Below, in pieces: positions 15,701 through 15,890 of a stretch of DNA of 64,000 nt (position 1 is its first letter; each line of letters opens with the position of its first letter). The stretch comes from Podarcis muralis. Its lineage: Eukaryota. Location: positions 58,528,001 to 58,592,000 of the forward strand of contig NC_135661.1 of NCBI RefSeq assembly GCF_964188315.1. The letters are read 5' to 3'. The notes under the pieces were generated by a model. It had not been told where the DNA came from and did no database searches. It saw nothing but the letters and a program-made list of their open reading frames with translations. A program made the translations under genes and the position numbers.

Positions 15701-15890
15701 TCTTCTCCCTCCCTTGCTTGCCTTCTCTGTGCAGCTGTGTCACTTTCTAAAGTCTCAGTTTTTGGAGGAACAAGTGAAGGCCATCAAGCAGTTGGCAGAC
15801 CATCTATCTAACTTGAGGCGCCTGGGAGTGCCCCAGGATGGTTTGGGAGAGCACCTCTTTAACAAGCTCACCCTGGGGGCGTGCAACTGA
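12750..15890 (+). CDS. Ferritin subunit (H/M-type scaffold, predicted ferroxidase-dead), 176 aa; exons 12750-12851, 13986-14132, 14952-15077, 15735-15890
   Basis: Exon translations: [34 protein letters not shown] | [49 protein letters not shown] | [42 protein letters not shown] | [51 protein letters not shown]. Three phase-0 GT-AG introns at the vertebrate ferritin positions (internal exons 147 and 126 nt). No stops or frameshifts. Confidence 0.95.
13031..13316. repeat. Dispersed repeat carrying a CTCF motif, copy 2 (ferritin intron 1)
   Basis: Homologous to 11481-11625. CAGCAGGTGGCGCT at 13072-13085. Bounded by CAGTGG...CCACTG. Confidence 0.55.

Follow-up and report, generated by a model that had tools for sequence, protein, structure and literature searches.

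What becomes of a ferritin when the carboxylates of its three-fold pore are exchanged for histidine and lysine? The question is raised by a four-exon ferritin gene in 64,000 nucleotides of Podarcis muralis DNA (RefSeq contig NC_135661.1, positions 58,528,001 to 58,592,000 of the forward strand), the whole of which is called the window here. The twin-carboxylate motif LCDFxEx of catalytic H and M chains, which one study describes as strictly conserved among the cytosolic ferritins of animals (PMC13088775), is absent from the encoded protein, and the fourth coding exon begins with LCHFLKS instead. In human H-chain numbering, obtained by adding 3 to the residue index in the window, this motif reads L129, C130, H131 (CAC), F132, L133, K134 (AAG) and S135, and the codons at 15735-15752 verified the two substitutions, D131H and E134K, to which a sequence-only reading of the stretch had drawn attention. 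Among 70 H/M-type ferritins of fish, amphibians and reptiles outside the clade described below, residue 131 is Asp in 70/70 and residue 134 is Glu in 67/70, so the His131/Lys134 pair is far from chance. We propose that the gene probably encodes an old, squamate-specific, non-ferroxidase ferritin subunit, in which acids of the iron route were turned into lysines at its origin, which has since been kept by purifying selection and which is most likely iron-inert.

The motif is common to the earlier RefSeq version of P. muralis, P. lilfordi, P. raffonei, Lacerta agilis and Zootoca vivipara, and an independent public run of 2017 includes a contig that spans 14949-15986 with a single mismatch, which is intronic; this recurrence shows that H131 and K134 are not an assembly slip. 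Exon 2 is matched exactly by a contig from the 2017 run, and window positions 2750-25890 are identical at every base to the public P. muralis chromosome OZ076960.1. The four coding exons (Table 1), joined throughout by GT-AG junctions, give a product of 176 amino acids that is 100% identical to NCBI XP_028594974.2 (P0171), 'ferritin heavy chain A-like [Podarcis muralis]'. The gene is an automatically annotated model already and no hidden gene; our literature search found no paper describing this squamate ferritin gene. Pfam PF00210 (ferritin) matches exons 2-4. In searches of the Protein Data Bank (PDB), frog M ferritin is the best match of exon 2, while exon 4 falls at the beginning of helix D in human H, human L and frog M ferritins, reaching from residue 130 to 178 of the human H chain by phmmer (Met-inclusive numbering).

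The fold around the altered pore seems to have been kept. An AlphaFold model of the single chain has a predicted template modelling score (pTM) of 0.72, with helices A-D confident and helix E at low confidence, and Foldseek places it at a template modelling score (TM) of 0.81 to both frog M and human H ferritin, that is, a normal ferritin bundle. Residues 131 and 134 lie on the first turn of helix D in this model, as in canonical ferritins. The residues R76, L114, H118, D126, C130 and L138 are all present in the P. muralis protein; among its 14 clade members, R76, D126, L114, L138 and C130 never vary and H118 occurs in 13/14, which sustains the earlier claim that the gate residues were retained. 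Together with helix E residues (L169, L165-type), the pore-gate pairs are consistent with a 24-mer cage.

To which ferritins does this gene belong, and how old is it? The order of a BTB/zinc-finger gene, the ferritin and an Archease gene on the minus strand is shared by Podarcis and five other species, each with a ferritin orthologue at the same locus: Paroedura (gecko), Tiliqua (skink), Sceloporus (iguanian) and the lacertids Zootoca and Lacerta. The proteins form a single clade of 14 (support 99 in the Shimodaira-Hasegawa-like approximate likelihood ratio test, SH-aLRT; 98 with 11 proteins), made up of three geckos, two skinks, five lacertids, one anguid and three iguanians, and in trees that contain no FTL sequence this clade falls within the reptile H/M-type ferritins named 'heavy chain A/B-like'. 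The anguid, Elgaria, is placed by the tree alone, with no neighbour genes within 10 kb. All 7 extracted orthologue coding sequences, from 7 species spanning crown Squamata, are intact and have three phase-0 introns in common, with canonical splice sites save one GC donor in Elgaria. The spread of the clade and these intact, shared-intron sequences make the gene older than the crown-squamate split, which lies about 200 million years back. The gene is probably a squamate-specific duplicate of reptile H/M-type ferritins, with orthology given by synteny.

Three further candidates were rejected as orthologues. Rhineura P0172, which has intact sites, sits in a tandem ferritin array elsewhere and falls outside the clade in the tree; Sphenodon (tuatara) P0212 and P0231, likewise with intact sites, also fall outside it, a placement made on the tree alone; and the Liasis olivaceus python protein P0289, with A131, groups with the tandem-array clade of squamates and has neither ZBTB8A nor Archease in its 10-kb flanks. 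The best 120 matches listed included no snake, agamid, teiid or amphisbaenian orthologue. The python protein is of interest for itself: it carries K61, A62, Q65 and A131 together with E134, so that squamates have lost pore and ferroxidase residues a second time, in a separate lineage of the family.

The orthologues allowed us to ask whether the gene is under selection. Pairwise Nei-Gojobori ratios of nonsynonymous to synonymous divergence (dN/dS) between families are 0.15-0.24 at dS 0.6-1.5, and omega is 0.183 under a Goldman-Yang codon model fitted on the species tree, with a log likelihood (lnL) of -2094.5 against -2196.8 at omega = 1 (delta lnL 102). The ferritin gene is clearly held by purifying selection. 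With the gates kept and Lys134 in 13/14 members, the earlier statement that the structure is selected while the acidic entry has been removed appears a fair one.

The two pore positions have different histories. Apart from the Gln of Elgaria, position 134 is Lys throughout, which amounts to 1 change on the species tree, and the codon is AAG in 6/7 orthologue coding sequences; position 131 is Asp in 7 members, Asn in 2 geckos and His in 5/5 lacertid species, 3 changes on the tree, and its codons GAC, AAC and CAC are single-base steps. On an all-forward reading each change at 131 (N, N, H) loses the negative charge, a reversal in Heteronotia being possible. E134K is ancient and squamate-wide, while D131H is later and lacertid-specific. 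The sequence-only reading had treated the pore change as one charge reversal; both substitutions are real, but they represent two events. Random substitution among orthologues, which it had named as a counter-indication, is not what is seen at Lys134, whereas 131 does vary (D, N, H). A plausible order of events would begin with E134K on the clade stem; D131 would have been freed of constraint once Lys134 was present, and would then have been replaced at least twice, by Asn in geckos and by a His fixed in the lacertid ancestor, leading to the His131/Lys134 pore.

By comparing the clade with its 70 paralogues, we found only eight clade-defining changes, at positions where the clade conserves one residue and the paralogues another: F12Y, Q58E, E61K, E62K, E134K, Y137F, T153S and Y168H. 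Three of the eight are Glu-to-Lys changes on the Fe2+ route, at 134 in the pore, at 61 in the transit/nucleation region and at 62 in the di-iron site; K61 shows 0 changes in the clade and K62 is present in 12/14 members. H65 is lost and variable across the clade (Y, D, N, Q, H), E64 is mostly Gly, and E27, E67 and E107 (14/14) are invariant. In P. muralis the di-iron set E27, E62, H65, E107 and Q141 is incomplete, with K62 and Y65, while E27, Y34, E107 and Q141 are kept, as is E140; among the nucleation carboxylates E57, E60, E61 and E64 only E57 is kept, the others being L60, K61 and G64. The K61, K62, G64 and Y65 of exon 2 therefore mean that ferroxidase and nucleation ligands are lost. These residues suggest that the pore, transit and ferroxidase stations were charge-reversed together before the crown-squamate split, and that the altered pore belongs to a wider reversal along the Fe2+ route, in a chain that has no ferroxidase centre to feed. 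Lacertid and gecko proteins have a net charge of -1 to -6 against a paralogue median of -8.

Another of the eight changes, Y168H (codon 15849-15851, residue 165 in the window), which turns GEYLF into GEHLF before helix E, is found in 14/14 clade members against Tyr in 70/70 paralogues, and is the cleanest signature of the clade.

What the altered route would do can be judged from the mutants described in the literature for human H, human mitochondrial and frog M ferritin. D131N alone removes rapid Fe2+ uptake in human H ferritin (PMC13088775); in mitochondrial ferritin D131A removes the rapid phase while E134A leaves about 40%, and E61 is a key nucleation residue (PMC12022971); E62K alone eliminates ferroxidase activity in FTHL17 (PMC7760355). 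Because replacing D131 by Asn or Ala and E134 by Ala costs fast Fe2+ uptake in these proteins, the lizard pore should not conduct Fe2+ quickly. By analogy, we infer that the lizard chain should not admit Fe2+ fast, pass it on, oxidise it or seed a core. The protein is about 70-75% identical to active paralogues, which makes co-assembly with them plausible, and an iron-inert subunit could in this way dilute working pores and catalytic sites in mixed cages. Alternatively, its role might be unrelated to iron storage, as has been proposed for mammalian FTHL17.

Altered pores are not confined to squamates. In a mixed mammalian sample of FTHL17-like, mitochondrial (FtMt) and H-type ferritins (n=115), retrieved with a bat FTHL17-like protein as the query, 25/115 have a residue other than Asp at 131 and 15/115 a residue other than Glu at 134. 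The FTHL17-like motifs (129-137) include LCHFLES, LCDFLKS, LCNFLKR, LCDFLMS and LCDFLRH, of which LCDFLKS equals the squamate ancestral motif, and the residues scatter over H, S, N, A and E at 131 and over K, M, R, T, S and G at 134. Thus LCDF(I/L)E, presented earlier as near-invariant, deserves the name in the canonical chains (H, M, L and mitochondrial) and loses it in ferroxidase-dead paralogues. Across 225 retrieved ferritins, a non-D/E pore occurs in 40/81 proteins with damaged ferroxidase ligands against 15/144 of the rest (Fisher p 1.6e-10, kinship ignored).

This association, which makes damaged-ligand proteins about 8 times likelier to have such a pore, would also be expected under passive relaxation: with a dead ferroxidase centre there would be no need to deliver Fe2+, the pore would drift, and the gene would be kept for a property of the fold or cage. 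The mammalian scatter, the Gln134 of Elgaria and the place of 131 among the 22% most variable sites of the clade all agree with such drift. However, a free site would scatter, and Lys134 is kept in 13/14 members over lineages with pairwise dS of 0.6-1.5; the human L chain is also without a ferroxidase centre, yet retains LCDFLE; the changes at 131 all lose the negative charge and none goes to Glu; and E61K and E134K are found together again in turtles and in mammals. We therefore consider relaxation possible but on balance unlikely as the explanation of the squamate pore.

The pairing of positions 61 and 134 was examined across the retrieved ferritins. Basic 61 and basic 134 co-occur in 23/46 against 2/181 proteins (p 1e-16, raw counts), while phylogenetically independent pairs (7 pairs, p >= 0.25) were underpowered, so that the coupling is suggestive. 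Three turtle paralogues, P0198, P0236 and P0245, have K61 and K134 with E62, next to H65 in P0198 and P0245 and R65 in P0236. Considered as orthologues, these K61/K134 proteins were rejected, for they are without the clade signature (Q58, E62, mostly H65, Y137, Y168) and cluster with turtle paralogues; their pair apparently arose independently. A different departure is seen in felid 'ferritin heavy chain-like' proteins with LCSFLET (S131), of which P0326, P0350, P0355 and P0358 have intact ferroxidase ligands and P0342, among others, has R65. The felid motif is a natural single-carboxylate pore in a possibly active chain.

Could the squamate pore serve another ion, as the sequence-only reading had suggested? 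Triads of His118, Cys130 and His131 with a ring of Lys134 might form a Zn or Cu site, or a channel for anions such as phosphate, so that the cage would gain another cargo or a part in metal sensing. H118 and C130 are indeed retained beside H131, H131 is fixed in five lacertid species, and the net charge of lacertid and gecko proteins is raised. But H131 is lacertid-only and most orthologues have D131, so a His site cannot be the conserved function of the clade; moreover, the proposal is drawn from sequence, and a single-chain model cannot display a three-fold pore. A re-purposed pore is thus improbable in our judgement. A bolder form of the inert-subunit reading would hold that squamates have had a dedicated 'closed-pore' subunit since before the crown split, that the Lys ring itself was selected and acts as a brake on iron uptake or release by mixed cages, that the lacertid His131 with His118/Cys130 is a Zn/Cu plug or an anion gate, and that the 61/134 pairing in turtles and FTHL17-like genes is convergent. 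Taken as a whole, this is speculative and rather unlikely.

The reading that we favour, an old subunit that is inert towards iron and kept under selection, also has points against it. Conservation of Lys134 is typical rather than exceptional, since 104/173 sites change as much or more, and Gln134 is tolerated in Elgaria. D131 is kept by most clade members, and the pore that it lines with Lys134 could be close to neutral and let some Fe2+ through; a cyanobacterial ferritin is reported to work with a single pore carboxylate at the D131 position (PMC13088775). The transcripts are mixed as well. Low-depth contigs of the 2017 run show the exon 2 to exon 3 junction, but in the same run an upstream exon ending at 11427 is joined to exon 2, skipping the ATG exon; it could reflect another promoter, within the GC-richer region at 10-12 kb, or read-through from the 3' end of ZBTB8A. 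The contig 14949-15986 is unspliced from exon 3 through intron 3 to exon 4, at a depth similar to that of the spliced exon-2 contig, and could stem from intron retention, pre-mRNA or DNA carry-over. Annotated isoforms X2/X3 are without exon 4 and hence without the pore; the tail encoded from the acceptor at 15611 is an exact match to P. raffonei isoform X2 and has 3 differences in 16 residues from L. agilis isoform X3. Finally, three raw 2026 RNA sequencing runs gave 0 reads at about 12% sampling, a result valid only if the organism is present in the runs. Expression may be low or tissue-restricted.

The intron-retaining and exon-skipping transcripts, the truncated isoforms and the zero read count would likewise fit a decaying duplicate, or a sequencing or annotation artefact. 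This we regard as highly improbable: in 7 species the reading frame is intact and the splice sites are canonical, save for a GC donor in Elgaria; omega is 0.18; five lacertid species and an independent run show the same motif; and the window agrees with the public assembly. Selection and orthologue data effectively refute it. As to iron-dependent regulation, Rfam (E <= 5) found no iron-responsive element over 10500-16500, and no C-N5-CAGWG hairpin was found in the 3 kb upstream of this gene or of any orthologue; the Rhineura tandem paralogues, meant as a positive control, also had none, which makes the absence uninformative.

The positions of the features are collected in Table 1. A WD40 gene resembling RBBP4 lies beyond the Archease gene, and a long open reading frame (ORF) with an intermediate-filament domain (Pfam Filament, E 3.5e-15) occupies 43036-44100 on the minus strand; it fits SYNC, in line with the conserved gene order ZBTB8A-ZBTB8OS-RBBP4-SYNC. 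The first 2000 positions of the window (1-2000), 5' of the BTB/zinc-finger gene, are very GC-rich (GC 0.72) and presumably are its CpG-island promoter. At the Zootoca locus, a tRNA-like match (31 bits) at 13068-13126 (+) within the Archease gene region is probably a tRNA-derived short interspersed nuclear element.

Table 1. Features of the ferritin locus, in window coordinates; residues of the ferritin in human H-chain numbering except M1-M34.
Feature	Position	Strand	Remarks
Pore motif	15735..15752	+	CTG TGT CAC TTT CTA AAG = L C H F L K; immediately 3' of the canonical AG acceptor
Coding exon 1	12750..12851	+	M1-M34, helix A; E27 and Y34 retained; ATG at 12750, GT donor at 12852
Coding exon 2	13986..14132	+	Helix B; AG/GT sites; Pfam Ferritin match; E58, K61, K62, G64, Y65
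Coding exon 3	14952..15077	+	Loop and helix C; AG/GT sites; E107, L114, H118, D126 all retained
Coding exon 4 and stop codon	15735..15890	+	Helices D and E; starts LCHFLKS
Polyadenylation signal AATAAA of the ferritin gene	15947..15952	+	2017-run contig stops at 15986
Alternative upstream non-coding exon, 3' part	11300..11427	+	Loose end of contig maps to 11405-11426; GT donor at 11428
Alternative acceptor inside intron 3	15611..15661	+	...DPH followed by 16 residues; 141-aa isoform without helices D and E
Upstream neighbour, ZBTB8A-like BTB and C2H2 zinc-finger gene	3507..8751	+	Pfam BTB match; gene call
Downstream neighbour, ZBTB8OS-like Archease-domain gene	18129..23076	-	Gene call with PF01951

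The locus matters in several ways. A whole reptile order carries a selected Lys134, while the literature treats the pore carboxylates as strictly conserved, and a natural D131N in tarsier mitochondrial ferritin was the basis of a whole 2026 study (PMC13088775). The clade offers a natural pore series, D/K, N/K, H/K and D/Q, for the charge control of iron entry, release and metal selectivity. It also suggests that non-catalytic ferritin subunits were made more than once in vertebrates, here by a route other than that of the mammalian L chain, which would bear on sauropsid iron storage.

Among the known systems, frog M (H') ferritin is the closest solved structure, at 64-65% identity and with the TM given above. 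Of its iron-path residues studied by mutation, D127, E130, E57 and E136 in frog numbering, three are naturally replaced in the lizard protein (human D131, E134 and E61). The frog mutants are laboratory replacements by Ala, Glu or other residues in an active enzyme, whereas the lizard has natural Lys and His in an inactive chain and keeps E140. The D131N variants, engineered in human H and mitochondrial ferritin and natural in tarsier FtMt, lose the Asp as do the two N131 geckos of the clade, but they keep E134 and a working ferroxidase centre, while the clade has Lys134, a dead site and order-wide fixation.

The mammalian L chain (FTL) is likewise a non-catalytic subunit, and the lizard protein has K62 and E107 as L chains do. 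In L chains this pair is a stabilising salt bridge, and the lizard residues could form one of the same type. The likeness ends at the iron route: the human L chain retains the acidic LCDFLE pore in the exon-4 alignments where the lizard protein has H131 and K134, and L chains carry the nucleation carboxylates E57, E60, E61 and E64 (H numbering), unlike the lizard protein with its L60, K61 and G64.

The closest parallel is the mammalian FTHL17 family, whose genes are intronless retrocopies. Like the lizard protein, its members are H-like, with a ferroxidase centre that is dead through E62K or related changes, often with K61, and with a pore motif eroded in many of them. The family is eutherian, with germline or embryonic stem cell expression. 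The products of the X-linked FTHL17 genes (PMC7760355) reportedly lack ferroxidase activity and serve a purpose other than storage (PMC7760355, PMC13149808), and FTHL17 is reported to be partly nuclear and tied to the supply of Fe2+ for TET1 (PMC13149808). The lizard gene differs in its ancestral four-exon structure and its place between ZBTB8A and ZBTB8OS, which speak for an independent origin; the one mammalian FTHL17-like protein in our first tree, P0012, fell outside the squamate clade, on a very long branch (1.34) and with unsure placement. The general phenomenon has a counterpart in mammalian FTHL17, and the squamate case is an interesting variant and not a new type of system. What is distinctive to squamates is that, where the mammalian FTHL17-like family is heterogeneous, the pore has stayed stable (Lys134 in 13/14) over a very long period, within a gene whose ancestral, intron-containing structure is preserved.

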